Source of the DNA: Paraphysomonas bandaiensis
Lineage: Eukaryota; Protista; Chrysophyceae
Length of the DNA stretch: 27,223 nucleotides
NCBI GenBank assembly: GCA_965644295.1
Contig: CBFFRP010000552.1
Span: 1-27,223 of the forward strand
Direction of reading: 5' to 3'
Below the pieces are notes generated by a model. The model was not told the DNA's origin and did not search any database. It worked only from the letters and a program-made list of their open reading frames with translations. Below, one piece after another: positions 4,116-26,282 of the stretch; the stretch's first letter is position 1; each line of letters opens with the position of its first letter. A program made the translations under genes and the position numbers.

Positions 4116-5294
4116 GTGATAGACCAACGTTACGATATACATTCACGTCCATTGAACCATCGAGCGAACGAATGTCCCCAAAATTCAACTGGAAAGACCA
4201 AGAAACCCCAGAAATCTGGGAAGGTTTTCACATTCGAGAATATCCGCAGAGGAGGAACCGAGTCTGACTCGGAGTCCGAAGCGAATATGCTTTATGACTG
4301 CGGTGTTGATATATATGATAAAAGTGACACATGTTGTATGATTGGTACTGCTGAACACTATACATACATAGATACATGCTGCTCATCGTCTATGTTTTTG
4401 ATAAATGATCAGCAAGTATTCGATGAATCAACTCCATCAGATAGAGTTATCAGAGGCTCCAAGAAAGGGAACAGTAGAAAAAATAAGGAAGCTCCGTTGC
4501 CATCAAATGCACAAGAACTACTAGCTGCAGAACGGGAACTTACATCAGAACAGGAGGACTGGGTCTCAAAATTTCCGTATCGTAGTATTATTGGAGCAAT
4601 CCTGTATCTCGCACTCCACACAAGACCAGATCTCGCCTATGTAATCGGACTACTATCGAGATACAGCAGTAATCCTACATACGCATCGTGTCGTTTAGCT
4701 ATTCATTTATTGAAATATTTGAGAGGCACCACCGGCAAAGGAATCAAATTCAGTGGGAGTAAGTTTGGTTTACATGTATTTAGTGATGCGGACTGGGCAG
4801 GTGATATACTAACGAGACGTTCAACTACCGGTTATATTGTATTCTTATGTGCTGGAGCAATCGCATGGCAGTCCAAACTGCAGACTACAGTGGCAACTTC
4901 CAGTATGGAGTCCGAGTATATGGCTGAATATGCGGCCATGCAAGAACTGGTGTGGCTACGGGGGGTGTTACGAGAGCTAGGACTCGCATTGACGAAGCCA
5001 ACCCCATTCTTCATGGACAGCAAGAGTGCAAAAGATTTGTCAGAAAATCCAGTCTACCACAAAAGATCAAAACATATTCAGATAAAGTACCACTGGGTTC
5101 GGGAACACGTAAATGGAAGGTTTCCTACAGCCAGATTGATTCATGTATCGACTAAGGATATGGCGGCCGACATATTTACAAAAGCGTTATCTACAAAGCT
5201 CTTTAAACTCCATGAAGAAACTATCACAAGGGAAAAGAGGAGCATTTCAAATGAAGTTGAGAAGAATCAGAAGAAGCGGTTCAAGAAAGGTTAA
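4116..5294 (+). pseudogene. Internally deleted Ty1/copia gag-pol remnant (partial zinc knuckle, protease motif, RT C-terminus, RNase H)
   Basis: NHRANEC (HX4C half of the CCHC knuckle), YIDTCCS (protease-like D-T/S motif), FPYRSIIGAILYLALHTRPDLAY (copia RT end), FSDADWAGDILTRRSTTGY, SSMESEY, HKRSKHIQIKYHWVRE and MAADIFTKAL (Ty1 RNase H). No integrase and no YxDD core. Confidence 0.92.
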
Positions 5295-5453
5295 GGGTGT
5301 GTTTTTTTAGTGGGTAAGAATCCCACATAACTGTGTTACAGCGAAGTGTGATGTTCACAGTATCTTTATGAAGATTTTCACATCCGTTTTATCCTAAGAT
5401 GACTAGATGATATATATAGCTGCAGTATAATGACGATTACTCGTTTCTACATT

Positions 5454-5748
5454 GAGGAGGAGTGTTGGAATGCGTATGGTTCTCTAAGATAGTACTGTAG
5501 AATACGTTAAATACAATGTGAAAAACAGTAATACGTAGTCAATAGTCAAAGGTGCTATATAGCTATAACTGTGAAACTGAAGTATTATATCATGACGATT
5601 CAAGAAACGGAAGTTGAGCAGTGGTTGACATGAACGAAATAAGTTATCATGTTGTTGACATGTCTTACATGACAACACACACAATTGTGTATACAATTAT
5701 AATAAAGTAATCTATCTAGTTTGACTAACTTAAACTTCTCTTACAACG
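5454..5748 (+). mobile_element. Polypurine tract and probable 3' LTR of the copia element
   Basis: gaggaggag (5454-5462) is immediately followed by TGTTGG at 5463. AATAAA is at 5701 and the candidate end is ..TACAAC(g) at 5742-5748. No matching 5' LTR seen, so the right boundary is uncertain. Confidence 0.6.
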
Positions 5749-6717
5749 ATCTTAATCATCTAAAAATGGTCAATTGTCAATAACGAGTGGCAATTGCGTA
5801 GACCAACGAAATCGTGTGCTTGAGGGTAAATCCTAGTAATCTAGCGGTCTGTAGTCTTTTCTCTTCATAATAATCTAAACCTACCACATTCGTTTGCATG
5901 AAACCGGCTACTCATCCTATATATCGTTAGTTAACATATTATAGTGATGTCATTAAACATGTCTAAAGGTGCTATAAAAGCCCACGGTTTTACTGCACCG
6001 ATTTGACCAGATAGCTTCGGTTAGCACTATGTTGACGATTCGCATAGCATAGAAGTATGTATGATTATTAATTAATAATAGTATATATACTATTAAAAAA
6101 TGACTACCAAATCGCGGAAGTCAGTCTCGTCAATCATACCATTGGCATACAATGTGTTAAGCAGCGATTTTAGTTCTTTTTTTAACTCTTTTCTATCGTT
6201 TGCTGTGTACGCTGCCTTGAAAAATTCGAAACGATTGGCCGCGGTTTCGTTTAGCTTATCGCCAAAACTATTCCAATTTTTTTGAAATTCTGTGAAAATT
6301 CATGGATTGTTTTAATATTATATCGATACTATTTTACACACCACATAATACATAATAAGCATAATACTATTACTATCATGAAACTAGATAGCGAAACGTA
6401 ACATCAGAAACAACTTCAAAACTTGAGGTTACGCACAAAACACAAATGATTAATCACAAAAAAATTGAAAATGAATATGATGGTAACTTCATAAAGGGAG
6501 TGGAGTAGCCAGAGCTCTCTCCATCTGAATTAGAACAAGACCAAAACAAAATTGAGCAAATCTTTTCCAACACAGTTATGTTAAAACTTAGCACATACAA
6601 TTAAACTAAAACTGAAATATATATATTACAAAAAAGGTATACCTCAACATCAATAACTCATTTTCTGTATCTTGTACACGCAAGTCCTGTCGCACGATTA
6701 GTCATCCACAGAATGTA

Positions 6718-9700
6718 TCAGAGTTCAAATTCAGATGAATAATCGTTTTCATAATTGCCACCAAATCTGATGAAAAAAAAATAAAAAATCGCATTATTTT
6801 TGAGATTATATCCTTACACTTCTTTGAATAAGTCAGGCTCACTATCAGAAGAGAAATCCATATCTAACAGATGCGCAACATTACTCATAACAATGGAACC
6901 ATCGGATGCGGTATTACGTTGAAATGTGAGACTGGTTTTCTCAGCAGGTCGAAAATTACTGGAATCGCCATATGAAATAGTCGAAACAACAGCAGCTTCG
7001 GTATCTGTGTCAGCAGCAACAATGGGATCAAGTTTAGTTGTTGGTAGTAGTGGGACAATGGTGGTATCGGGCCCCACTTCTACAACGGAGGGGAAATCGT
7101 TCCTGTGTCGCTGCTGATGGCTAGTTGGGTCACTGCTGGAGAGGTGACGGGGACTGTGTCCCTCTTCCGTGGCTGTAGGAGTACTATCATTATTCAGACG
7201 ATGCGTTCCCTCCTCTCCAGTAACACAAGAAGCAACAGGTGACACTAATGCTGGGCATTGACCGACTTTATTTGAAATTCGCTCTTCCGCCTGATTTTTC
7301 CACGAGTAGAGATAGCGGTATCCGACATACACTACAAGTAGCAGAAGAACAATGAAATATATGGGATGGTACCACATATATTGCCACATCATGATCAGAG
7401 ATACTGCAAAGAGTGGCTGGAGAAGATGAATGATCATACGCTGCCAAGTGCTGCTCACTGCACCGAGTTGTTGAACCAAGATAGATAACAGAGCTATCAC
7501 AGAGAAACGTCTCGTATAAGTTCGACCGGAAGGAACCACAGCACCACTTCTATAGTAAAATTCACTCCTGTCTTTCCATTTCTTAGCCACTGCACCCGGA
7601 TAAAGACTGTGATAGGACCGCACAATTGCGCTCTCCAATTGATGCGGGAAGAATTTGGCAACATTCACGGATACAAACATATACTGAGGCGTATCAAGTA
7701 CCAGATCGTTCGATTCTTCTGACCTATTGCTGATACTTTCAATTGCATTGTAGAGTGCAGCTTGAGCAGCCATAACTTCATACCGGACTAAACTTGGAAT
7801 GATAAAATGAATTATGGCGACTTCAGACGACTCATACAGCAAAATCTCAAATAGAAATTGCAGTATGCATGCAAAAAGAAACATCATCTGCCACTCGAGT
7901 CCTCGTTGAAGACCTCGTAACATGGAGTAAAAAATAAAGCAGAGATTCAGCAGCACAACCAAAGCCCACATTATGCCTTTTACAAACTTTGAAACAACGT
8001 AGGTGTGGCGAAATCTGAAAAACACAACACAGCAAATATGAGATATCAGCAATGGTTTATTGGTGTATCACAGTCAACTCACTCTTCCTCTGATTTCGTC
8101 TCAAATATTTTGGCTGCCGGTGAAGCTACAAACACCAAGTAGGTAAGTACATTTATTGCGTAGAAAATTGCAATATCGCATATATGCAACATAGGAACGC
8201 TTTTTACCTGTACCGAGGACATCCAGCACAAACATGTGGAGCAGCTCCAGACCAATATGTATGTCTTCGACTTGATTCAATTTATTCCGCTTGACAGCCA
8301 CTTCCTTCTTTACTAAAGCAAGGTGTTCCTTCAGCGTTTTCTCAATAATACTCGCATACTTTGGCTTGAATTGACCATTGCTTCCTAAGCTGCAAGTAAC
8401 ACACTTAACGCAAAAACTTAAAAACATATCATAATACACATACCACCAGGCCATCATGAATGCATCCTTTTGTCTAGTGGTTCTTAGGCATCTCATTTGT
8501 TCCGCAATATCGTTGCACAGGTCCGTATATAAATCGTCTGTTGAGATGGACAGAATAGTAGACGAAATTGCTGCCACAGTATCCACTCCCTCAGACTGCT
8601 GGCTTACGGGACAGAGGCCATAATAGGGCTGAAAACTACTTGAATGTGAGTGAGGTGTACCCGTATTTCTGCTTAAGCGCTGACTACGACTGGAACGACG
8701 TTCAATGATTTGTAAGGATGGATTTACTTCTGCGACGATACTGCTAAGCGAAGATGACGCCAACTGCTGGGCGGCAATACAAGAATATGGCAGGTGGCGT
8801 GTTGATTCAATCGTTATGAGAGACGACGTTTTTCTCTTCCTCTCCACACTACTTCTAAATTGATCAGATAAATTTGTAGTAATGGCTGACACTCGTCTGC
8901 CAAATTGAGCCACACGCCGTTGAATCCGACCGTTTATTTGCTCAGCAGCATTTTTCCTAGAGCAGCATGCAGTGGGAGCAGCTAGAATGTCGAATATAAA
9001 GTCGACAATTGCATTTCCGAACATGCTGAAGATGGAGCATATAACAGAGGCAATCATGATAGCCTAATAAACACATACAGACGAGATGTAAAGACCAATG
9101 CTACGATGGAAAAGGGGGTTTATGTACCTTCAGAGTAACCTCAGGGCTAACATATACACACGAGTATCCCCCAATCGTGTCGTCATCTTCAACCCACTGA
9201 CACACTCTCTGGGATGAATCCAGCATTGACTTCTCAGTTGCGCACTGTGAGGCAGTGATATGAGCCTCACATTTTCCATTGTCTTCTGGATACTATAAGA
9301 ACGTCATTAGCATTACGAAAAGCAATATATACTACAAATATAGTTGGGTGATAATAATAAATGCAACTACCTCAAAGTCATACAACAACGCCAGGAAAAA
9401 CATCAGCATAGATAGTGTCGTTAACAGGTGCAGCAACACTCGAATTCTGTGGTCCACTGTATTCGTATAGTCTTTCGAGAGAACTACAGCAATGTAACGA
9501 TGATGGCTCTTAAGCTCTCTCCACAATCGACTCCACGGCAATTCTGTGTTGTACACTGCCGGGAAAACTTCCTTGACATACGAATGAAGTCGCATTTTCA
9601 TTGAATCCGTGGTTATTGCATTATGGGAAGCACTATTGAGGTCAGCACTCGGGATCGTCGCACATTTTAATTTCTTACTTTTGGGACCATACGCTGACGT

Positions 9701-12700
9701 TGCAAACATATAACACATTGCAAGGAACCCCATGCTCCAAATTGTACCGAACAACGATACCACCAACAGTACTGCTTTCAAGTCCTCAGGGGAATCGAAC
9801 TCCTGAGCCATAACAACAGTTGCAGAAAAGTCGCCAGCAATGTACTCTGACGTGCTCACGAGTTCCACATACCACGACTCTCGCAGAATCGCCTGCTCCT
9901 GCCCTGTCTCATCAACGCGTCGCTGAGAGGGAAAATGGTGTGTATCATACGATGCCAGCTCATCACCTCGGAATGGATATCCTATTGAAGTGGGTCGACA
10001 CAAGCATGTGGTGTTCCACACAGTATAGGAGTCAACAGTGCAGTTGAAGTTCCCTCTGGTGGACAAGACTCGGCAATGAGGTTCAGAGAAAATATCCGGG
10101 CAATGTAGCCTTACTTCTGCGGCAGTGCCATTACAAGTGACATTCACAGCTGACGGGTGACAGGGCAATATGTGAGTGGTGTACACATCATGATCACAAG
10201 TCACATTAAATGTGGTATTGCTAGCGTGTACTTGGCCGTAGTAGATAGGATAATTATTTTGTATAATTATCTTGAAAGAATCGTTGGTGTATATTGAGCC
10301 ATCAATAGCCATTTGCAACACATCCGAATTGTAATTCTCATTATTGTCATAAAGCTTCGACCGAATACTACTCAATGAAACCTTTAAACTCCGCGAGTGG
10401 TGCCGTGTACTGTTTCTATGAAATAGGAGAGACGACGCCAGTAATCCAGCCGACGTTTTTGCAAATGACTGTGGTACTGTCATTGAAATATCTTCACTAT
10501 TAACTGAAGAGGAAAAAATTTCTGTGATTTGTTGAAATGACTTTCGTAAAATCCGATTCCCGCGTTGGCCCTCAATCAGAGATCTTCTTACACCTGACCC
10601 ATACGTGTCCAGTGCGGACGCAACTCGGGATGCGATGAATGAGCTCTCGTTGAGGAGGAGGCTGCCGCGAGGATGAATGTTACTCGACGAGGCCGTTGAG
10701 GATGGCAAAATATTCATTGAAACAGTGGCAATGCTGTCTACTGCTGTCAGAGTGTCACTATACGCCTCATATGTGTCCACCGATTGCAGTGTAGCGTTAC
10801 TTAAAATCACATCAGCAATGTTGAGACCATACTCTGCCCCCAATTCAGATAGTTCACTCAATTGTGTCGTAAGAGTAACTAAAATTTGTTGCCATTCCAG
10901 AATCGACTCCACAGTTGGATCATCCACTCTAGTGACACCATCTAACTCCTTGAGATTGGCTACTCTCATATCAGTGCGTACTCTCGCCTCCTCAGCTGTA
11001 TACTCACAAAACAAGCCACTGAATCCTTTATCACATAGACACTTCGCCTCACATGAAGAGTCAATCAACAGACACTCGGACATAGCAGCTCCGCTGTCAC
11101 TGTCCTGAAGTATGCAACTGCCTCGATGCGAGCAGTTGCCGGTACATGTCTTCCGAAGAAAATCGCAAACGGAGGATGACTCCGTATTCTTACAGTACTC
11201 CCATACACTGCAGTCATAGTCAGTGTCACAAACCACACCTGGAGAAGGTGTTAGCAAATCGCTTTTAGGTACACAACCATGGTTAGATGCACCATCTTCT
11301 CCCACATACCCATCCAAGCACGATCCACATGTATGATCAACACTAAAACACTCATGACGGTTCAGAGAGGTACAGTTGGGTGCTGAGGAGCAGTTCTTGG
11401 TATTCAGATAAGAACTGGACAATGAGAGGATATGCTTCGTCAACTCAATATTGTTTCCACTCGATTCTAGTTCCAATCGAAACTTCTCGCGTGCTAATGT
11501 TGTCGAGAGGGCTGTATTGGAACGAACCACAACTGACATCTGCAACCGAGAAGCTGCATCCAAACTATCCAGCACACGAACATAACACAACAATATGTAT
11601 CCATTCATACTGTCTCCAGGTGGAAATGTGGAGCTGGCATAAGACATCTCCAACCGACTTCTCACAATCGGATAGCGGTCATCCTCTACATAACCCATTA
11701 TATAGGACAATGGCAAGTCTTCATCAGACCAAGACTCCGCAATGAGCGTAAAGACTGTATCCCAAGCTATACCTGAGGGAGGGAACACTGAAAGTAGACC
11801 AGGCTGAGGAGGAGTATTAAACATCACTGTCAATGATACTGTGGACGAGCCACAAGTAAGTGAAAATACATAGGGAACCGACCGACCAGGAATAGAGCCG
11901 GCACTAACAACCAAATTGACTGACTGTAGCCCTTTTGCTAGTGATACATACGTCGCCGTAGTTGTAATAGAAGCCAGATCAACAGATGGCTCGTTGATTG
12001 CCCAAAATGCTGATTGGGACACACTTAATTGCGCAGTTCCCAGCAAAACCAGAGAAGACAGAGGGTTGACACCATTCGCTGCTCCGCTCCTCCTTATAGA
12101 CACAATCGGAGCCAATGCTTCAGTCACTCGCACAACCACTGAGCTCTCCGCTTGCCTGCCGTCAGCAACACTAAGCACTTCCACACTTATCGAATACTCC
12201 GAGCGCTCCCTTGTCTTATTCGTAGTAAATATATGAAGTAAATGTGGAGTTGTGGTAGCATTTGATTGTATATTCAAATCATCACACCGCAGAAGGAGAG
12301 CTGGAAACAACTGCATACAAGTCCAACGGAATTCAAACCCACTGCTCTCAGCTGGAGGGCGTAATTCGGGTGGAATATTTTTATCGTAACTGCCAGATGC
12401 ATCCAATAACACACTTCCGCCGATTCGCAATGATTGCTGTGATCCTCCCTCAATGATTGCCACAATATCGGACTGAACTACTGACACGTACACAACTGTG
12501 GATGAGGACAGCCCCGACAGAGAGTTTGTCACAGATAACTTTATTTCGTAAACAGAACTTACGTTAAAAGAATAAGGTAGCAACTTAAATTTTCTCGGGT
12601 CACTCGACAATGACACTAACTCAGAGTGCTCCACTTCACCCTCAAATATTTTCCAATCATAGATTAAGTTGGAATACGATACAGAACCGTCGCATTCAGT

Positions 12701-15700
12701 TAAAAAAGCATTAGATTGCAGTACCAGAGGAGTGTAAGTGAATATATGTCGAGAGAGTTGTCCCACCATAGAAACATACGGCAGAATATCATTTACCGTT
12801 TTTATGATAGCTATGGCAGAGCTGCATTCACCGAGAAAATTGCACAGCCATAGCTCAAAGATGTACCTATAACCGCCTTGAAATAGTTGCGCTGGCATTG
12901 CAGGTGGTGGGCTAATCACGTAATTCTCGACAAGCCATTCCTGAACTGTATGGACGGTATCGCTAACACTGGTCACAGTGATGTTGAAGTGTTTCCATGG
13001 TCGACCACCCGAACCAGAGGAGGCAGTAATATCGATCACAGGTCTGTCGCAGGGACCGGAGACTTTTGGGTGTGTCACAACGAGGGTGGGTGAGATGGGG
13101 TCGTAGGGGGCAGCTAAAACCATCTCTGTCCTGTTCACAGTAGCCCAGCCACTACACTCTGACGATGTGGAGGTGCATTGAGCTCTCAGTTGACCCCGCA
13201 GTAGCACCACAATATCACCCACTTCAGGTAGAAGAGGCCCTTTGAAATACACAGTAAGTGTGGTGGCCGAGGTCCAAAGGCAGTCTGACGATAAGGCCCC
13301 AGCTACATCCAGGAGACGAGAGCACTTGAAATATGAGGAATACTGCGCCTTGTCTGTAGGTGAATCAAATTTCAGGACAGCGGACTCACCACTATTTGAG
13401 AACTGAGCTGACATTAAACGCGGGGTGCTGGGTTCTACTTCAGAGGACTCTACAGTGAACGACTGCCCACTTCGGAAGATTACATCATACTCCTGCTGCA
13501 CTGCAAAATCCATCATAGTCACCTGTAGTGTGTACAGTCCCGGCGCACAGTTGGCGACAGTGAAGTAATGTGTCTTCGACCATGAGGAATGTGTAACAGT
13601 CACAATGTCATCCAGAAAGGGGGATACAGTGTACGAACCACTGCTGTTTGACACCCCAGCAGATATCCACATATCACTGCTGGATGACGGAGCTGCCGAA
13701 AGGGTTACTACAACCATATTCCAGCCCACACTATCTTCTTGCAGCACAAACATATTCAAATCCACAAATATGCTCTTACAACAGAGAGTTTCCCAAACGA
13801 CTGCATTCGAGAGCATTTCTTCATATGAGGTAGCTAACAGGTGGTCGTTTTGCGTGACACAATAGAGCGTGTAATTCGTGGACGGTGTTAGAGATGTTAT
13901 CGTGATTGCGGCGTTAACAGAAGTATCATCCACATAGTCAAAATTGTTTGTAGAAATTACAGAACTTACAGAGTCTACGATTAACATAGATTCAAAGCTT
14001 GCGCAATAGACATAGCCTCTGTTTGAGAGCTGAATTGAAAGTGTAACGCGATCTCGATACGCAGTCCAGTCCATACGTAATACTTCAGGTAAATGTGCAA
14101 CTGAAGGAGCATGCTTCGATGGAAAAGACGAATGTAGTTGTCCAGATGGCGCACCTGTAGGTTCACTAAATGGTTGTCGTGTTGGCTCACTCGATGGCTG
14201 TCCAGTGGGGATACCAGACGGCTGTCCAGTAGGTTGATCAGATGGTTCACCTGTAGGGAAACTAGATGGCTGTTCTGTTGGTTCACCGGATGGCAGTCCT
14301 GTTGGTTCACCGGATGGCTGTTCACTAGGGATCCCAGATGGCTCACATGTGGGTTGACATGATGGCTCACCTGTAGGTTCACTAGATGGCTGTTCTGTTG
14401 GTTCACCGGATGGCAGTCCAGTAGGTTGGCCAGATGGCTGTCCTGTTGGTTGACATGATGGCTGTCCACTAGGGATCCCAGATGGCTCACATGTGGGTTG
14501 ACATGATGGCTAACCTGTAGGTTCACTAGATGGCTGTTCTGTTGGTTCACCGGATGGCAGTCCAGTAGGTTTGCCAGATGGCTGTCCACTAGGGATCCCA
14601 GATGGCTCACATGTGGGTTGACATGAAGGCTCACCTGTAGGTTCACTAGATGGCTGTTCTGTTGGTTCACCGGATGGCAGTCCAGTAGGTTGGCCAGATG
14701 GCTGTCCTGTTGGTTGACATGATGGCTGTCCACTAGGGATCCCAGATGGCTCACATGTGGGTTGGCATGATGGCTCACCTGTAGGTTCACTAGATGGTTG
14801 TCGTGTTGGTTCACTAGATGGCTGTTCTGTTGGTTCACCGGATGGCAGTCCACTTGGGATCCCAGATGGCTCACATGTGGGTTGGCATGATGGCTCACCT
14901 GTAGGTTCACTAGATGGCAGTCCACTAGGTTCACTAGATGGCTGTTCTGTTGGTTCACCGGATGGCAGTCCAGTAGGTTGGCCAGATGGCTGTCCTGTTG
15001 GTTGACATGACGGCTGTCCACTAGGGATCCCAGATGGCTCACATGTGGGTTGGCATGATGGCTCACCTGTAGGTTCACTAGATGGTTGTCGTGTTGGTTC
15101 ACTAGATGGCTGTCCTGTTGGTTGACATGACGGCAGTCCACTAGGGATCCCAGATGGCTCACATGTGGGTTGGCATGATGGCTCACCTGTAGGTTTACTA
15201 GATGGTAGTTCACTAGGTTCACTAGATGGCTGTTCTGTTGGTTCACCGGATGGCAGTCCACTAGGGATCCCAGATGGCTCACCTGTGGGGAAACTAGATG
15301 GCTCACCTGTAGGTTTACTAGATGGCAGTCCACTAGGTTCACTAGATGGCTGTTCTGTTGGTTCACCGGATGGCAGTCCAGTAGGTTGGCCAGATGGCTG
15401 TCCTGTTGGTTGACATGACGGCTGTCCACTAGGGATCCCAGATGGCTCACATGTGGGTTGGCATGATGGCTCACCTGTAGGGAAACTAGATGGTTGTCGT
15501 GTTGGTTCACTAGATGGCTGTCCTGTTGGTTGACATGACGGCTGTCCACTAGGGATCCCAGATGGCTCACATGTGGGTTGGCATGATGGCTCACCTGTAG
15601 GTTCACTAGTTGGCTGTCCTGAAGGGAAATGAGTCGGTGCAGATGTCGGTCTCAAGCATTCATGGTAACTGGTTTGTGTGAGGTAGAATTCTGATAATTT

Positions 15701-18700
15701 AGTCATTGTGCATAGTTCGGAAGGGTAGACACCTGTGAACATATTGTTATCTCCCCTTAGGGCTTTTAATTCGGTTAGACTGGAAAAAGAGTCGGGGAGA
15801 GGACCCGTTAAGGAGTTATCCTTTAGAATGAGAGCAGTAAGAGAAGTCAACTGACCCAATGATGAGGGGAGAGGACCCGTTAAGGAATTGTAATATAGAC
15901 CGAGATAACGAAGAGAGGTCAGCTGACCCAATGATGAAGGGAGAGTACCCGCTAAGGAATTGGAATGTATATGGAGAACATGAAGAGACGTCATTTGACC
16001 CAATATTGAGGGGAGAGTACCCGCTAAGGAATTGGAATGTAGATTGAGACTAACAAGAGAAGTCATCTGACCCAATGATGAGGGCAGTGTACCGGTGAGA
16101 GAGTTGAAACCAATATTCAACAAAGACAATGCAGTCATATCACTGATAGATGAGGGGAGAGATCCTGATATCCCATAATAAACTATGTCCACACTGGTTA
16201 TGTCTGATCCTGTACATGTGACTCCACTGAAAGTGCATTTATTCCCCACATTCGCACAGGTCCATTCAGACCGTTTGGAGGTAACATCCGTAGCCTCAAT
16301 GAAATCACACAGCGCTGCCTCTTCCAGGCTAATTGTCGGTTCACTAGTTGGCTGTCCTGAAGGGAAATGAGTCGGTGCAGATGTCGGTCTCAAGCATTCA
16401 TGGTAACTGGTTTGTGTGAGGTAGAATTCTGATAATTTAGTCATTGTGCATAGTTCGGAAGGGTAGACACCTGTGAACATATTGTTATCTCCCCTTAGGG
16501 CTTTTAATTCGGTTAGACTGGAAAAAGAGTCGGGGAGAGGACCCGTTAAGGAGTTATCCTTTAGAATGAGAGCAGTAAGAGAAGTCAACTGACCCAATGA
16601 TGAGGGGAGAGGACCCGTTAAGGAATTGTAATATAGACCGAGATAACGAAGAGAGGTCAGCTGACCCAATGATGAAGGGAGAGTACCCGCTAAGGAATTG
16701 GAATGTATATGGAGAACATGAAGAGACGTCATTTGACCCAATATTGAGGGGAGAGTACCCGCTAAGGAATTGGAATGTAGATTGAGACTAACAAGAGAAG
16801 TCATCTGACCCAATGATGAGGGCAGTGTACCGGTGAGAGAGTTGAAACCAATATTCAACAAAGACAATGCAGTCATATCACTGATAGATGAGGGGAGAGA
16901 TCCTGATATCCCATAATAAACTATGTCCACACTGGTTATGTCTGATCCTGTACATGTGACTCCACTGAAAGTGCATTTATTCCCCACATTCGCACAGGTC
17001 CATTCAGACCGTTTGGAGGTAACATCCGTAGCCTCAATGAAATCACACAGCGCTGCCTCTTCCAGGCTAATTGTCGGTTCACTAGTTGGCTGTCCTGAAG
17101 GGAAATGAGTCGGTGCAGATGTCGGTCTCAAGCATTCATGGTAACTGGTTTGTGTGAGGTAGAATTCTGATAATTTAGTCATTGTGCATAGTTCGGAAGG
17201 GTAGACACCTGTGAACATATTGTTATCTCCCCTTAGGGCTTTTAATTCGGTTAGACTGGAAAAAGAGTCGGGGAGAGGACCCGTTAAGGAGTTATCCTTT
17301 AGAATGAGAGCAGTAAGAGAAGTCAACTGACCCAATGATGAGGGGAGAGGACCCGTTAAGGAATTGTAATATAGACCGAGATAACGAAGAGAGGTCAGCT
17401 GACCCAATGATGAAGGGAGAGTACCCGCTAAGGAATTGGAATGTATATGGAGAACATGAAGAGACGTCATTTGACCCAATGTTGAGGGGAGAGTACCCGC
17501 TAAGGAATTGGAATGTAGATTGAGACTAACAAGAGAAGTCATCTGACCCAATGATGAGGGCAGTGTACCGGTGAGAGAGTTGAAACCAATATTCAACAAA
17601 GACAATGCAGTCATATCACTGATAGATGAGGGGAGAGATCCTGATATCCCATAATAAACTATGTCCACACTGGTTATGTCTGATCCTGTACATGTGACTC
17701 CACTGAAAGTGCATTTATTCCCCACATTCGCACAGGTCCATTCAGACCGTTTGGAGGTAACATCCGTAGCCTCAATGAAATCACACAGCGCTGCCTCTTC
17801 CAGGCTAATTGTCGGTTCACTAGTTGGCTGTCCTGAAGGGAAATGAGTCGGTGCAGATGTCGGTCTCAAGCATTCATGGTAACTGGTTTGTGTGAGGTAG
17901 AATTCTGATAATTTAGTCATTGTGCATAGTTCGGAAGGGTAGACACCTGTGAACATATTGTTATCTCCCCTTAGGGCTTTTAATTCGGTTAGACTGGAAA
18001 AAGAGTCGGGGAGAGGACCCGTTAAGGAGTTATCCTTTAGAATGAGAGCAGTAAGAGAAGTCAACTGACCCAATGATGAGGGGAGAGGACCCGTTAAGGA
18101 ATTGTAATATAGACCGAGATAACGAAGAGAGGTCAGCTGACCCAATGATGAAGGGAGAGTACCCGCTAAGGAATTGGAATGTATATGGAGAACATGAAGA
18201 GACGTCATTTGACCCAATGTTGAGGGGAGAGTACCCGCTAAGGAATTGGAATGTAGATTGAGACTAACAAGAGAAGTCATCTGACCCAATGATGAGGGCA
18301 GTGTACCGGTGAGAGAGTTGAAACCAATATTCAACAAAGACAATGCAGTCATATCACTGATAGATGAGGGGAGAGATCCTGATATCCCATAATAAACTAT
18401 GTCCACACTGGTTATGTCTGATCCTGTACATGTGACTCCACTGAAAGTGCATTTATTCCCCACATTCGCACAGGTCCATTCAGACCGTTTGGAGGTAACA
18501 TCCGTAGCCTCAATGAAATCACACAGCGCTGCCTCTTCCAGGCTAATTGTCGGTTCACTAGTTGGCTGTCCTGAAGGGAAATGAGTCGGTGCAGATGTCG
18601 GTCTCAAGCATTCATGGTAACTGGTTTGTGTGAGGTAGAATTCTGATAATTTAGTCATTGTGCATAGTTCGGAAGGGTAGACACCTGTGAACATATTGTT

Positions 18701-21700
18701 ATCTCCCCTTAGGGCTTTTAATTCGGTTAGACTGGAAAAAGAGTCGGGGAGAGGACCCGTTAAGGAGTTATCCTTTAGAATGAGAGCAGTAAGAGAAGTC
18801 AACTGACCCAATGATGAGGGGAGAGGACCCGTTAAGGAATTGTAATATAGACCGAGATAACGAAGAGAGGTCAGCTGACCCAATGATGAAGGGAGAGTAC
18901 CCGCTAAGGAATTGGAATGTATATGGAGAACATGAAGAGACGTCATTTGACCCAATGTTGAGGGGAGAGTACCCGCTAAGGAATTGGAATGTAGATTGAG
19001 ACTAACAAGAGAAGTCATCTGACCCAATGATGAGGGCAGTGTACCGGTGAGAGAGTTGAAACCAATATTCAACAAAGACAATGCAGTCATATCACTGATA
19101 GATGAGGGGAGAGATCCTGATATCCCATAATAAACTATGTCCACACTGGTTATGTCTGATCCTGTACATGTGACTCCACTGAAAGTGCATTTATTCCCCA
19201 CATTCGCACAGGTCCATTCAGACCGTTTGGAGGTAACATCCGTAGCCTCAATGAAATCACACAGCGCTGCCTCTTCCAGGCTAATTGTCGGTTCACTAGA
19301 TGGCTGTCCTGAAGGGAAATGAGTCGGTGCAGATGTCGGTCTCAAGCATTCATGGTAACTGGTTTGTGTGAGGTAGAATTCTGATAATTTAGTCATTGTG
19401 CATAGTTCGGAAGGGTAGACACCTGTGAACATATTGTTATCTCCCCTTAGGGCTTTTAATTCGGTTAGACTGGAAAAAGAGTCGGGGAGAGGACCCGTTA
19501 AGGAGTTATCCTTTAGAATGAGAGCAGTAAGAGAAGTCAACTGACCCAATGATGAGGGGAGAGGACCCGTTAAGGAATTGTAATATAGACCGAGATAACG
19601 AAGAGAGGTCAGCTGACCCAATGATGAAGGGAGAGTACCCGCTAAGGAATTGGAATGTATATGGAGAACATGAAGAGACGTCATTTGACCCAATGTTGAG
19701 GGGAGAGTACCCGCTAAGGAATTGGAATGTAGATTGAGACTAACAAGAGAAGTCATCTGACCCAATGATGAGGGCAGTGTACCGGTGAGAGAGTTGAAAC
19801 CAATATTCAACAAAGACAATGCAGTCATATCACTGATAGATGAGGGGAGAGATCCTGATATCCCATAATAAACTATGTCCACACTGGTTATGTCTGATCC
19901 TGTACATGTGACTCCACTGAAAGTGCATTTATTCCCCACATTCGCACAGGTCCATTCAGACCGTTTGGAGGTAACATCCGTAGCCTCAATGAAATCACAC
20001 AGCGCTGCCTCTTCCAGGCTAATTGTCGGTTCACTAGATGGCTGTCCTGAAGGGAAATGAGTCGGTGCAGATGTCGGTCTCAAGCATTCATGGTAACTGG
20101 TTTGTGTGAGGTAGAATTCTGATAATTTAGTCATTGTGCATAGTTCGGAAGGGTAGACACCTGTGAACATATTGTTATCTCCCCTTAGGGCTTTTAATTC
20201 GGTTAGACTGGAAAAAGAGTCGGGGAGAGGACCCGTTAAGGAGTTATCCTTTAGAATGAGAGCAGTAAGAGAAGTCAACTGACCCAATGATGAGGGGAGA
20301 GGACCCGTTAAGGAATTGTAATATAGACCGAGATAACGAAGAGAGGTCAGCTGACCCAATGATGAAGGGAGAGTACCCGCTAAGGAATTGGAATGTATAT
20401 GGAGAACATGAAGAGACGTCATTTGACCCAATGTTGAGGGGAGAGTACCCGCTAAGGAATTGGAATGTAGATTGAGACTAACAAGAGAAGTCATCTGACC
20501 CAATGATGAGGGCAGTGTACCGGTGAGAGAGTTGAAACCAATATTCAACAAAGACAATGCAGTCATATCACTGATAGATGAGGGGAGAGATCCTGATATC
20601 CCATAATAAACTATGTCCACACTGGTTATGTCTGATCCTGTACATGTGACTCCACTGAAAGTGCATTTATTCCCCACATTCGCACAGGTCCATTCAGACC
20701 GTTTGGAGGTAACATCCGTAGCCTCAATGAAATCACACAGCGCTGCCTCTTCCAGGCTAATTGTCGGTTCACTAGATGGCTGTCCTGAAGGGAAATGAGT
20801 CGGTGCAGATGTCGGTCTCAAGCATTCATGGTAACTGGTTTGTGTGAGGTAGAATTCTGATAATTTAGTCATTGTGCATAGTTCGGAAGGGTAGACACCT
20901 GTGAACATATTGTTATCTCCCCTTAGGGCTTTTAATTCGGTTAGACTGGAAAAAGAGTCGGGGAGAGGACCCGTTAAGGAGTTATCCTTTAGAATGAGAG
21001 CAGTAAGAGAAGTCAACTGACCCAATGATGAGGGGAGAGGACCCGTTAAGGAATTGTAATATAGACCGAGATAACGAAGAGAGGTCAGCTGACCCAATGA
21101 TGAAGGGAGAGTACCCGCTAAGGAATTGGAATGTATATGGAGAACATGAAGAGACGTCATTTGACCCAATGTTGAGGGGAGAGTACCCGCTAAGGAATTG
21201 GAATGTAGATTGAGACTAACAAGAGAAGTCATCTGACCCAATGATGAGGGCAGTGTACCGGTGAGAGAGTTGAAACCAATATTCAACAAAGACAATGCAG
21301 TCATATCACTGATAGATGAGGGGAGAGATCCTGATATCCCATAATAAACTATGTCCACACTGGTTATGTCTGATCCTGTACATGTGACTCCACTGAAAGT
21401 GCATTTATTCCCCACATTCGCACAGGTCCATTCAGACCGTTTGGAGGTAACATCCGTAGCCTCAATGAAATCACACAGCGCTGCCTCTTCCAGGCTAATT
21501 GTCGGTTCACTAGATGGCTGTCCTGAAGGGAAATGAGTCGGTGCAGATGTCGGTCTCAAGCATTCATGGTAACTGGTTTGTGTGAGGTAGAATTCTGATA
21601 ATTTAGTCATTGTGCATAGTTCGGAAGGGTAGACACCTGCAGAACATATTGTTATCTCCCTTAGGGCTTTTAATTCGGTTAGACTGGAAAAAGAGTCGGG

Positions 21701-23352
21701 GAGAGGACCCGTTAAGGAGTTATCCTTTAGAATGGAGAGCAGTAAGAGAAGTCAACTGACCCAATGATGAGTGAAAGTGCATTTATTCCCCACATTCGCA
21801 CAGGTCCATTCAGACCGTTTGGAGGTAACATCCGTAGCCTCAATGAAATCACACAGCGCTGCCTCTTCCAGGCTAATTGTCGGTTCACTAGATGGCTGTC
21901 CTGAAGGGAAATGAGTCGGTGCAGATGTCGGTCTCAAGCATTCATGGTAACTGGTTTGTGTGAGGTAGAATTCTGATAATTTAGTCATTGTGCATAGTTC
22001 GGAAGGGTAGACACCTGTGAACATATTGTTATCTCCCCTTAGGGCTTTTAATTCGGTTAGACTGGAAAAAGAGTCGGGGAGAGGACCCGTTAAGGAGTTA
22101 TCCTTTAGAATGAGAGCAGTAAGAGAAGTCAACTGACCCAATGATGAGGGAGAGGACCCGTTAAGGAATTGTAATATAGACCGAGATAACGAAGAGAGGT
22201 CAGCTGACCCAATGATGAAGGGAGAGTACCCGCTAAGGAATTGGAATGTATATGGAGAACATGAAGAGACGTCATTTGACCCAATGTTGAGGGGAGAGTA
22301 CCCGCTAAGGAATTGGAATGTAGATTGAGACTAACAAGAGAAGTCATCTGACCCAATGATGAGGGCAGTGTACCGGTGAGAGAGTTGAAACCAATATTCA
22401 ACAAAGACAATGCAGTCATATCACTGATAGATGAGGGGAGAGATCCTGATATCCCATAATAAACTATGTCCACACTGGTTATGTCTGATCCTGTACATGT
22501 GACTCCACTGAAAGTGCATTTATTCCCCACATTCGCACAGGTCCATTCAGACCGTTTGGAGGTAACATCCGTAGCCTCAATGAAATCACACAGCGCTGCC
22601 TCTTCCAGGCTAATTGTCGGTTCACTAGATGGCTGTCCTGAAGGGAAATGAGTCGGTGCAGATGTCGGTCTCAAGCATTCATGGTAACTGGTTTGTGTGA
22701 GGTAGAATGTTGATAATTTAGTCATTGTGCATAGTTCGGAAGGGTAGACACCTGTGAACATATTGTTTTCTCCCCTAAGAATTTTCAATTTGGTTAGACT
22801 GGAAAAAGAGTCGGGGAGAGGACCCGTTAAGGAATTGCCAAATAAAAAGAGATAACTAAGAGAAGTTCTCTGACCCAATGATGAGGGGAGAGCACCCGTT
22901 AAGGAATTGTCATGCAGACTGAGAAGACGAAGAGAAGTCATTTGACCCAATGATGAGGGGAGAGTACCCGCTAAGGAATTGACATATAGATGGAGATCGC
23001 GAAGAGAAGTCATCTGTCCCAATGATGAGGGCAGTGTACCGGTGAGAGAGTTGGTACCTATATCCAAAAACGTCAATGCAGTCATATCACTGATAGATGA
23101 GGGGAGAGATCCTGATATCCCATCATTATTTAGATTCACATTGGTTATATCTGATCCTGTACATGTGACTCCACTGAAAGTGCATTTATTCCCCACATTC
23201 GCACAGGTCCATTCAGACCATATGGAGGTAACATCCGTAGCCTCAATGAAATCACACAGCGCTGCCTCTTGTGAGGCAACTGAAGCAACTGTGAATGTTT
23301 TCAATACAGAAAAACTGATAAAAAGAAATAAAAAGCGAATGAAAAGATTCAT
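6718..23352 (-). CDS. Giant polycystin-1-like surface receptor gene (signal peptide, tandem LRR modules, Pro/Ser/Thr stalk, REJ/PKD-like, EGF-like, GPS-like, multi-TM); disrupted as assembled
   Basis: Signal peptide MNLFIRFLFLFISFSVLKTFTVAS at 23352. ORFs 22129-23352, 21752-22141, 14510-21610 and 9332-14074 are collinear, and the last two share one frame separated only by a TAG at 14510-14512. 3' exons join at GT-AG sites (9371|~9292 YPEDNGKCEAH...EVTLK|AIMIASVICS...). The final stop is either at 6814 or at TGA 6718 after a last intron. Confidence 0.8.
9371..14074 (-). other. REJ/PKD-like, Cys-rich EGF-like and degenerate GPS-like region plus first TM segments of the giant gene
   Basis: AIIEGGSQQSLRIGGSVLLDASGSYD..FRWTC and NTPPQPGLLSVFPPSGIAWDTVFTLIAESWSDEDLPLSY are REJ hallmarks. 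CLCDKGFSGLFCE is EGF-like. CTVDSYTVWNTTCLC is GPS-like. LLVVSLFGTIWSMGFLAMCYMF and VLLHLLTTLSMLMFFLALLY are hydrophobic segments. Confidence 0.8.
14140..15630 (-). repeat. Coding 12-bp-unit repeat encoding a Pro/Ser/Thr-rich P(S/T)xx stalk
   Basis: PSCQ PTCE PSGI PSGQ PTGL PSGE PTEQ PSSE tetrapeptides arranged in higher-order blocks. Confidence 0.95.
15600..23280 (-). repeat. Coding tandem array of 738-bp (246-aa) capped LRR modules: 8 intact, 1 truncated, 1 with a 1-bp deletion, 1 divergent
   Basis: Exact 738-bp period (15859, 16597, 17335 ... 21025). Each unit has a Cys N-cap (WTCANVGNKCTFSGVTC), 24-aa plant-type extracellular LRRs (LxxLxLxxNxLxGxLPxxLG), a Cys C-cap and a PT/PS linker. 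Confidence 0.97.
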
Positions 23353-24112: not shown

Positions 24113-26282
24113 ATGGCAAATATTCCAGTAACATCTTTCTTACCTCGTGTTGAGAATAGAGGGTGTCGGTCAGTTGATTATGATGTACTGAATCCTGAAA
24201 TATCTCAACAGGAAAACTCAGCGATACGTGTATTATCTGATCTTAAAGAAGGAAAGATTACAGTCAGTGATTTAATGGGACCATTATATGGGGAAACTGG
24301 ACTTACTACGAGTGTCAGTCTTCCTCCAGGGTCAACACAACAGGTACCTGCAGCCGCTGCAGTACACTTTGAACCCAAAGATGAATTCAATGATATTCTA
24401 GATAATAATGTACATCCTACTAATTACATGAACCCTGAACCTGTAGAAATATATGATCTAGTTGTCATTGGTGCTGGGGTGTCTGGCTTGCTTTCTGTAA
24501 TCACAGGAAAGTGGCTAGGCAAGAGATGTGCACTAATTGAGTCACATGCTATGGGGGGAGATTGCTTAAATATCGGCTGTGTACCTTCCAAAGCCTTGCT
24601 TGCAGCTTCTCGTGCTCTGTCTAATGTCCGCGATTCTGAGCAGTTTGGAGTTATCTTGCCTCCAGGTGAAGTCAAGATTGACTTCGGTGCAGTTATGCGT
24701 CGCATGCGTAAAATACGGTCAGAAATCTCTGCCCATGACTCAGTGGAGAGATATTCGCGAGATTTTTGCGAACATGTATATGTAGGCCGAGGAGTGTTTT
24801 CATCTGATGCTCCGAATACTGTGGTTGTGACGGGCGACGATGGATCGACGAGACAGTTGAAATATAAGAAGGCAATGATCGCCACTGGTGCCTCGGCCAG
24901 CATCCCGCCTCCCCTGCTGTCTATTCCCCACCTCACCAATGCCAATTTCTTCAATCTTACAGAGCTTCCCCCTCGCATGGTAGTCGTTGGCTGTGGGCCA
25001 ATTGGACTGGAAATGTCACAGGCGATGGCGGTCTTTGGTACGCGGGTGACCTGTTTGGAGTTCTTCGACAGGGTGCTTCCGAGAGAGGATCCCGATGCAG
25101 CATCTATTTTATTGGACCAACTTAAGAGAGACGGTACGTCCGTTGCACTACTAGTTGTATTACTTTATGAAGATATGCCATGATCAGATATGTGTCTCAA
25201 TAATCCTTTCGTTAATCACTATTCTGTCGGGTAGCGTTACATTGGACTCATTTGTTTTATAGGTATTCAGTTCATGCTTCAATCTAAGGTGACCTCAGTC
25301 GAGCTTGCTCGCGAAGGGTCTTCACTGTATTGTGCACCATGGCCACTATACCGGGTCACGGTTGAGAATACTGTTACTGGTGAAACCGAATTGCTAGAGT
25401 GCGAGGCGATTCTGAATGCCACAGGCCGTGTGCCGAATGTATTTAATATTGGATTAGAAAATGTAATGTAATGTTTGTTCGTTTGTTTTCACACGATGAT
25501 GTTCGGTTTTTATGTACAGGTGGGCGTAACGTTTGACAGTCGAAATGGCGTGCATATAAATGATGCGTTCCAAACAGCCAATCGCGATATTTACTCGTGT
25601 GGGGACTGTGCAACTGTGTACAAATTTACACATTCCGCCGATTTCCAAGCCCGTCTAGCGGTTCGAAACATGTTTCTTGGCGATGCCAACCGCCTGAGTG
25701 ATATGTTGATTCCATGGTGTAAGTATGCGTTGCTATCTTACAGCGACATATACACTTCTGCGACCGTGCTGTTTTTTTCCTTCTGGTGTTTGTTCTCATT
25801 CCTAATATATGTATAGGTACGTACACACACCCTGAGATTGCGCATGTTGGAAAGTATGAATCGGAACTAGATAAAGAAGGTGTTGACTATGAAAGTTTCA
25901 AGCGAGATCTCCCCCCTGTAGACAGGTGGCAATATAAATTCTTCTATGTCTTATAATGCACTCAAGTAAACTTCTCAGATGCCGTTGTGATGGTGTCGAG
26001 GCCGGTTTTGTCAAAATAACTGTTGCAAAGGGGACTGACAAGATATTAGGCTCCACGATATGTGGCCCTAATGCCGGTGATATGATAGCAGAGCTAACTC
26101 TGTGCATGCAGTATGGCATCGGCGTTGCTGAGCTGGCTGGTACAATACACTGCTACCCCACTACTCAAGAGGCGGTTCGACAATGTGCGCTGCAGTATTA
26201 CAAGTACTACAAAGACCCTAATGGACTACCTATGACTGTTCTAAACAAACTTATGGCAGAAGTGGAATCCCAGAGCACGTAA
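24113..26282 (+). CDS. Spliced class-I pyridine nucleotide-disulfide oxidoreductase, mercuric reductase-like (5 exons)
   Basis: Motifs YDLVVIGAGVSG (FAD), GGDCLNIGCVPSK (redox disulfide), VVGCGPIGLE, ATGRVPN, IYSCGDC, FTHSAD, IPWCTYTHPEIAHVG and IHCYPTTQEA. GT-AG introns at about 25134-25262, 25463-25519, 25719-25816 and 25926-25978 restore one frame. Stop is TAA at 26280-26282. Confidence 0.92.

Follow-up and report, generated by a model that had tools for sequence, protein, structure and literature searches.

Paraphysomonas bandaiensis, a unicellular marine relative of the algae, carries a family of giant predicted surface receptors whose leucine-rich repeat (LRR) heads have most probably been diversified by an inherited process that combines positive selection, unequal crossing-over, and gene conversion. 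The window analyzed here is the whole of a 27.2-kb contig (C552; C-numbers denote contigs) of a 62.6-Mb eukaryotic assembly. One receptor gene of this family occupies the minus strand from 23352 to approximately 6814. It encodes, in order, a signal peptide, 11 LRR modules, a Pro/Thr stalk, a REJ domain, a Cys-rich stretch, and approximately seven hydrophobic helices. The features, in window coordinates, are as follows:

23266..23352, minus strand: start codon and predicted signal peptide; the nearest relative is the signal peptide of the C366 gene.
22600..23265, minus strand: LRR module 1 (m1), 666 nt, with a Cys N-cap, plant-type 24-residue LRRs, a Cys C-cap, and a short Pro/Thr linker.
23145-23125, 23073-23053, 23001-22981, 22929-22909, 22857-22837, 22785-22765, and 22713-22693, minus strand: the cassettes of m1 that carry the variable x residues.
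21863..22599, minus strand: module 2, array type; one base is absent in a G run near 22147, giving a frameshift in the assembly.
21485..21862, minus strand: module 3, truncated, with a 361-nt out-of-register deletion (junction 21772/21771) and three 1-nt indels.
15600..21484, minus strand: modules 4–11, eight 738-nt copies that are 0–2 nt apart.
14075..15620, minus strand: stalk rich in Pro/Thr/Ser/Gln, made of 24-nt repeats.
11507..12673, minus strand: REJ domain (Pfam PF02010, E 7e-43), 96–97% identical to the genes on C600, C566, and C526.
9332..11506, minus strand: Cys-rich EGF-like stretch, a GPS-like motif (by eye only), and two hydrophobic helices.
6814..9331, minus strand: spliced 3′ part with approximately five further hydrophobic helices and a tail; the exons were read singly and are unjoined.

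Each module is predicted to be a capped plant-type LRR solenoid. The repeats follow the 24-residue consensus of the plant-specific class, LxxLxLxxNxLxGxxPxxLGxLxx, and lie between Cys caps. An AlphaFold model of a module has a pLDDT of 94 and places the x residues on or beside parallel strands at the xxLxLxx segments. The top PDB matches of the modules are plant receptor ectodomains (GSO1, FLS2, PEPR1, MIK2, and SERK), and a word search with module 1 retrieved only generic LRR proteins at 27–47% identity. The heads of the family are continuous, intronless ORFs. Pfam matches on the ORFs were LRR, PT, and REJ only; NB-ARC, kinase, and Roc-COR domains were not found in the receptor ORFs by Pfam. 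For the 3′ part, searched exon by exon, Pfam gave no GPS, PLAT, or PKD channel domain, and the PDB gave no sequence match for this polycystin-like part. The Rfam search gave no match. It is by its REJ domain only that the body would be called polycystin-1-like.

As assembled, the window copy of the gene is broken by frameshifts and by one in-frame TAG in the stalk (14510–14512; GAG in the sister repeats). The breaks in modules 2 and 3 look like consensus noise, and the damage to module 3 is probably a noisy consensus. The TAG, if real, would yield a secreted multivalent LRR protein lacking a membrane anchor. No contig was accepted as allelic to the window locus; the 3.1 kb upstream of it occurs only once in the assembly, and a shared downstream flank was not found.

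The contig holds several other features. The same AT-rich 550-nt repeat stands in inverted orientation at both contig ends (1–587 and 26530–27197). It has 45-nt tandem units and an internal hairpin. The genome contains at least 40 copies, most of them close to the ends of contigs. Possibly an integrated element is bounded by this repeat, and the assembly is interrupted there. Positions 4116–5783 contain a Ty1/copia-like reverse transcriptase and RNase H remnant, recognized by eye (no Pfam match). At least 29 other copies of it are approximately 98% identical over 1.3 kb, thus suggesting recent activity. Two minus-strand ORFs at 881–2582, one of which was scanned and had no Pfam match, are probably exons of another spliced gene. 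A single-copy, spliced, and expressed gene for a mercuric-reductase-like pyridine nucleotide-disulphide oxidoreductase (24113–26282) is divergent from the receptor gene, and its nearest named relatives are from ochrophyte stramenopiles such as Heterosigma, Fibrocapsa, and Chrysoparadoxa.

A first-pass annotation had stated that module 1 differs from the other modules almost only at the x residues and is one 72-nt LRR shorter. Both statements were borne out, and every motif listed was found in its place; which LRR is absent is ambiguous, as several placements each give 60 differences. Compared with the module 4 type, 38 of 105 nt differ in the 35 x codons (24 amino acid changes) versus 22 of 561 nt outside them (9 amino acid changes; Fisher p 5e-19 for the contrast). 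The caps, linkers, and scaffold had also been described as nearly identical. This holds for the caps and linker (99%), but the LRR scaffold is just 93–94% identical. Between m1 and the array, the caps and linker show 2 differences in 261 nt and zero synonymous changes, whereas the scaffold of the LRR core differs at 17–20 of 300 nt (p ≤ 0.002 for this contrast). The caps thus date from far more recently than the cores, and crossing-over or conversion has presumably homogenized them. On this view, module 1 and the array module would combine recently homogenized caps with two older LRR cores that have been under different selection. The annotation had set its reading against an even divergence with many synonymous scaffold changes. 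An excess of non-synonymous change at the x positions was found, together with 9–11 synonymous codon changes in the core scaffold. The “other modules” are one type amplified approximately ten times, with variants among modules 4–11 spread as a gradient along the array. The window alone is a single pairwise comparison, with a pN/pS at x codons of only approximately 1.9, and the inference therefore rests on family-wide data.

At least 14 contigs carry the same type of head, and C66 alone has eight clusters. Approximately 19 related loci with LRR heads fall within approximately 75 REJ-domain receptor genes. From the loci read, a set that leaves out C66:298–311 kb and approximately 60 distant REJ genes, we extracted 436 LRR units, 298 of them distinct. 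Unit entropy is highest at positions 2, 3, 5, 7, and 8 of LxxLxLxxN. In the x codons, bases 1 and 2 vary while the third is nearly fixed, and 87% of the x residues are Tyr, Ser, Asp, Gly, His, Thr, Asn, or Arg. The number of internal LRRs per module ranges from approximately 2 to 46. The longest series is a single module of approximately 46 LRRs (C66:258200–262000), in which a few units, including an unusual acidic one, are repeated in changing order. In a paralogue at C114:35700–38900, a C-type-lectin-like region (by eye) precedes the LRR modules. Several paralogues contain frameshifts. LRR fragments outside intact genes occur on C36, C457, and C584, and these look like ordinary decayed copies.

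We estimated pN/pS along a minimum spanning tree of the distinct units at several distance cut-offs. At every cut-off, the ratio was 3.0–3.45 for x codons and 0.33–0.53 for the scaffold; these values are approximate, as the units recombine, the tree carries no codon model, and changes copied by conversion are not independent. Restricting the count to single-step codon changes gave 169 non-synonymous and 16 synonymous changes at x codons (pN/pS 3.5, bootstrap CI 2.3–6.4) and, for single-base codon changes in the scaffold, a pN/pS of 0.39. The ratio is thus above 1 at the x residues and below 1 in the scaffold, and the diversifying selection that the annotation had proposed for these residues is supported. 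An unlikely alternative is relaxed constraint only, in which exposed residues drift neutrally, conversion homogenizes the caps, and positive selection plays no part. The cap homogenization is real and inflates the contrast first reported, and the ratio for the m1–m4 pair is low. Neutral drift, however, predicts a pN/pS of approximately 1, whereas the family-wide lower bound is 2.3, and scaffold positions that are exposed on the convex side vary far less than the x positions.

The sharp localization of the change could also suggest a mutator targeted to the x codons, of the DGR or deaminase type. Synonymous change, however, is equal or lower at x codons than in the scaffold (0.039 vs. 0.041, and 0.024 vs. 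0.039), thus indicating selection and not a mutator, and the interleaved Leu codons remain conserved. All six types of substitution occur, with no A-only or C-to-T pattern. The hallmarks of a DGR (adenine-specific change and a template repeat with a reverse transcriptase) were not seen at the window, where the only reverse transcriptase nearby is of the copia type. The flat synonymous rate and the unbiased spectrum largely refute such a mutator, which we regard as highly improbable.

Exchange was seen at several levels. Within units, nearby sites are more compatible than distant ones (PHI-like test, p 0.001, main unit class), and the left and right halves of the cassettes look combinatorial. 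Within a gene, identical units reappear in changed order, in the 72-nt register. One module of C600 consists of units 15–19 of one neighbour followed by units 10–13 of another, in perfect 72-nt register. Larger pieces have moved as well. C366 is the nearest relative of the window signal peptide, N-cap (2–4 mismatches per 72 nt), and 3′ half of the array module, yet its REJ domain is only 35% identical to that of the window; the window body, in contrast, is 96–97% identical to those of C600, C566, and C526. This chimerism demonstrates, at the level of the assembled sequence, that heads have been swapped between predicted receptor bodies. Five contigs (C600, C191, C124, C526, and C639) have upstream flanks that are 96–99% identical over 1–3.5 kb and very different heads, and C584 is also grouped with these. 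The five may be alleles or recent duplicates. Misassembly of repeats from long reads could account for some of the mosaics. The family as a whole shows sequence exchange between paralogues, genes of chimeric origin, and variation in repeat number. The cassette-like exchange suggested by the annotation is thus supported within units, in blocks of units, and for whole heads, whereas a dedicated cassette library or a programmed system is not supported. The annotation had proposed a test of whether identical variable segments recur in different orders or loci; new orders within a gene were seen. Between loci, only 17 of 231 cassettes are common to different ones, and among the approximately 19 loci read, none of the nine regex-captured cassettes of the window had an exact copy elsewhere.

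Other samples (runs X1, X3, X8, and X10) were compared as assembled contigs only. The X3 flank is identical to the window, and its array pieces have depths of 467 and 393 versus 41 for the flank, corresponding to approximately 10–11 copies; the amplification of the module is therefore real. X10 is RNA, as the intron 25134–25262 is skipped. Its strain departs from the window at 4 of 1124 nt in the neighbouring gene, and the array-type piece 22428–22659 is present exactly, at a depth of 580. The array-type module is thus expressed and conserved in another strain. X8, which derives from a different study, is a marine metagenome of 2019; it contains the 263-nt m1 core with one mismatch and exact pieces of module 2; m1 depth equals that of the array pieces, and the unique flank was not seen in these incomplete records. 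Alleles of m1 are at single-copy depth in X1. They were not seen in X3 or X10, whose contigs have holes, so that absence is no proof; turnover might be faster than assumed. The first module and the copy numbers may differ between strains, as the data hint. With regard to the variation at x sites for which the annotation had proposed a check in reads and strains, the cassettes are identical or nearly so across strain and sample.

These samples bear on the remaining explanations. The indels and the deletion at modules 2–3, together with the frameshifts in several paralogues, would fit mis-polished long reads as the source of the array or of the m1 differences. An independent contig matches the m1 core with 1 mismatch in 263 nt, the depths in X1 and X3 agree with one m1 and an amplified array, and the differences preserve the reading frame and are located in x codons. 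The independent contig and the depth refute an artefact as the source of m1 and of the amplification, where it is scarcely credible; it may still account for modules 2–3 and the TAG.

A programmed assembly resembling that of VLRs or of antigenic variation would draw short variable segments from a pool of donors and copy them into a scaffold that stays constant as the clone grows. The combinatorial cassette halves, the near-identical upstream flanks with quite different heads, the stray LRR fragments, and the failure to see m1 in X3 and X10 are what it might produce. However, the genes are full ORFs rather than stubs, the window gene lacks a flanking cassette library, and the window cassettes are without exact donors among the loci read. 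A non-coding library of the VLR kind was not found in the window and the 10-kb stretches read, which contain complete heads and few stray fragments that look ordinarily decayed. For AID/APOBEC, the best match to PF08210 (APOBEC_N) had an E of 0.09, under the cut-off, in a search of one family in which introns could hide a gene. Cassettes are also stable across strain and sample, and their sharing would speak against different genes being assembled in the cells of one individual. We consider such assembly very unlikely. The receptor-diversification system that the annotation saw as possible in a protist is best read as inherited diversification; a programmed system with a donor library, an APOBEC-type gene, and changing cassettes is not supported. 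Frequent mitotic recombination could instead generate many head variants per locus in culture, that is, a receptor repertoire within a lineage. We hold this to be improbable. If true, C600, C639, C124, C191, C526, and C584 would be such variants, and a unicellular eukaryote would have a receptor repertoire selected by viruses or prey.

Inherited diversification, the reading we prefer, would work as follows. The receptor would have a polycystin-1-like body, made up of the REJ and membrane parts, from which a mucin-like stalk carries one or more LRR heads. Selection favours point mutations at the five exposed residues per repeat, as the pN/pS statistics show. The conserved scaffold would let the 72-nt units mispair, giving unequal crossing-over and short conversions of which the observed mosaics are the presumed products, and mispaired units would lead to repeats being added, dropped, and recombined. 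Similarly, the conserved caps, linker, and stalk would allow whole modules to be amplified (approximately tenfold here) and heads to move between bodies, a proposed route to the chimerism observed, and would also homogenize the caps within a gene. An amplified module would add avidity for one putative ligand. The selective agent may be a varying external ligand, such as prey surfaces, viruses, or parasites.

Several known systems share parts of this arrangement. In plant type I fast-evolving NB-LRR clusters, for example coffee SH3-CNL, Ka/Ks > 1 is confined to the x residues of xxLxLxx, and plant R clusters show conversion, unequal crossing-over, and chimeric genes (PMC3113787). As in plant R genes and receptor-like proteins, the repeats here are of the plant-specific 24-residue type, selection acts on the x residues, and paralogues exchange sequence. 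Unlike plant NB-LRRs or LRR-RLKs, the receptor has no NB-ARC or kinase domain, and the host is a unicellular stramenopile. It also differs from plant R genes in carrying a tandem series of small LRR modules, each with its own caps, on a stalk and a REJ/membrane body, and in unit DNA that is far more uniform, thus suggesting exchange in a single-repeat register. In the brown-algal ROCO LRR-GTPases, 72-nt LRR units are reshuffled with positive selection on four concave-face sites (Zambounis 2012, PMC3341825; Teng 2024, PMC11378527). Every LRR there occupies a separate exon, the GTPase is intracellular, and somatic recombination has been proposed but not shown (PMC3341825, PMC11378527). The host group, the 72-nt shuffling, and the concave-face selection are alike, but the head here is intronless and extracellular, with neither an LRR-per-exon structure nor Roc-COR; shuffling therefore cannot use introns or splicing.

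The VLR solenoid of lampreys and hagfish sits on a Thr/Pro-rich stalk. The family resembles VLRs (PMC3308329) in its capped short LRR solenoid, variable concave face, variable repeat number, and patchwork units, but differs in having complete germline heads, a plant-type rather than VLR-type repeat, and sequences that are stable between strains. With polycystin-1/REJ receptors, it shares an N-terminal LRR and the REJ domain. It also has several membrane helices, approximately seven compared with the 11-helix channel-like region of polycystin-1, and a putative GPS-like motif seen by eye, and the C114 paralogue would add its C-type-lectin-like region to the resemblance. Polycystin-1 does not have the many hypervariable LRR modules or the approximately 75 genes seen here, and Pfam matches to GPS, PLAT, or the PKD channel were not found in the exons of our receptor. 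We found no paper on Paraphysomonas LRR receptors or on stramenopile LRR-REJ families, in a search that most subscription papers lie outside.

Plants and brown algae already provide examples of the evolutionary mechanism, and the present case is best read as a variant of it on intronless, extracellular, polycystin-1-like receptors. How single-celled eukaryotes recognize viruses, parasites, and prey is largely unknown, and this family bears what would be a strong arms-race signature on a predicted extracellular receptor. The heads, compact and intronless, lend themselves to amplification, to sequencing clone by clone, and to expression in modules of 200 residues. The question raised in brown algae, whether LRR shuffling is inherited or somatic, thus becomes directly testable in a clonal organism.
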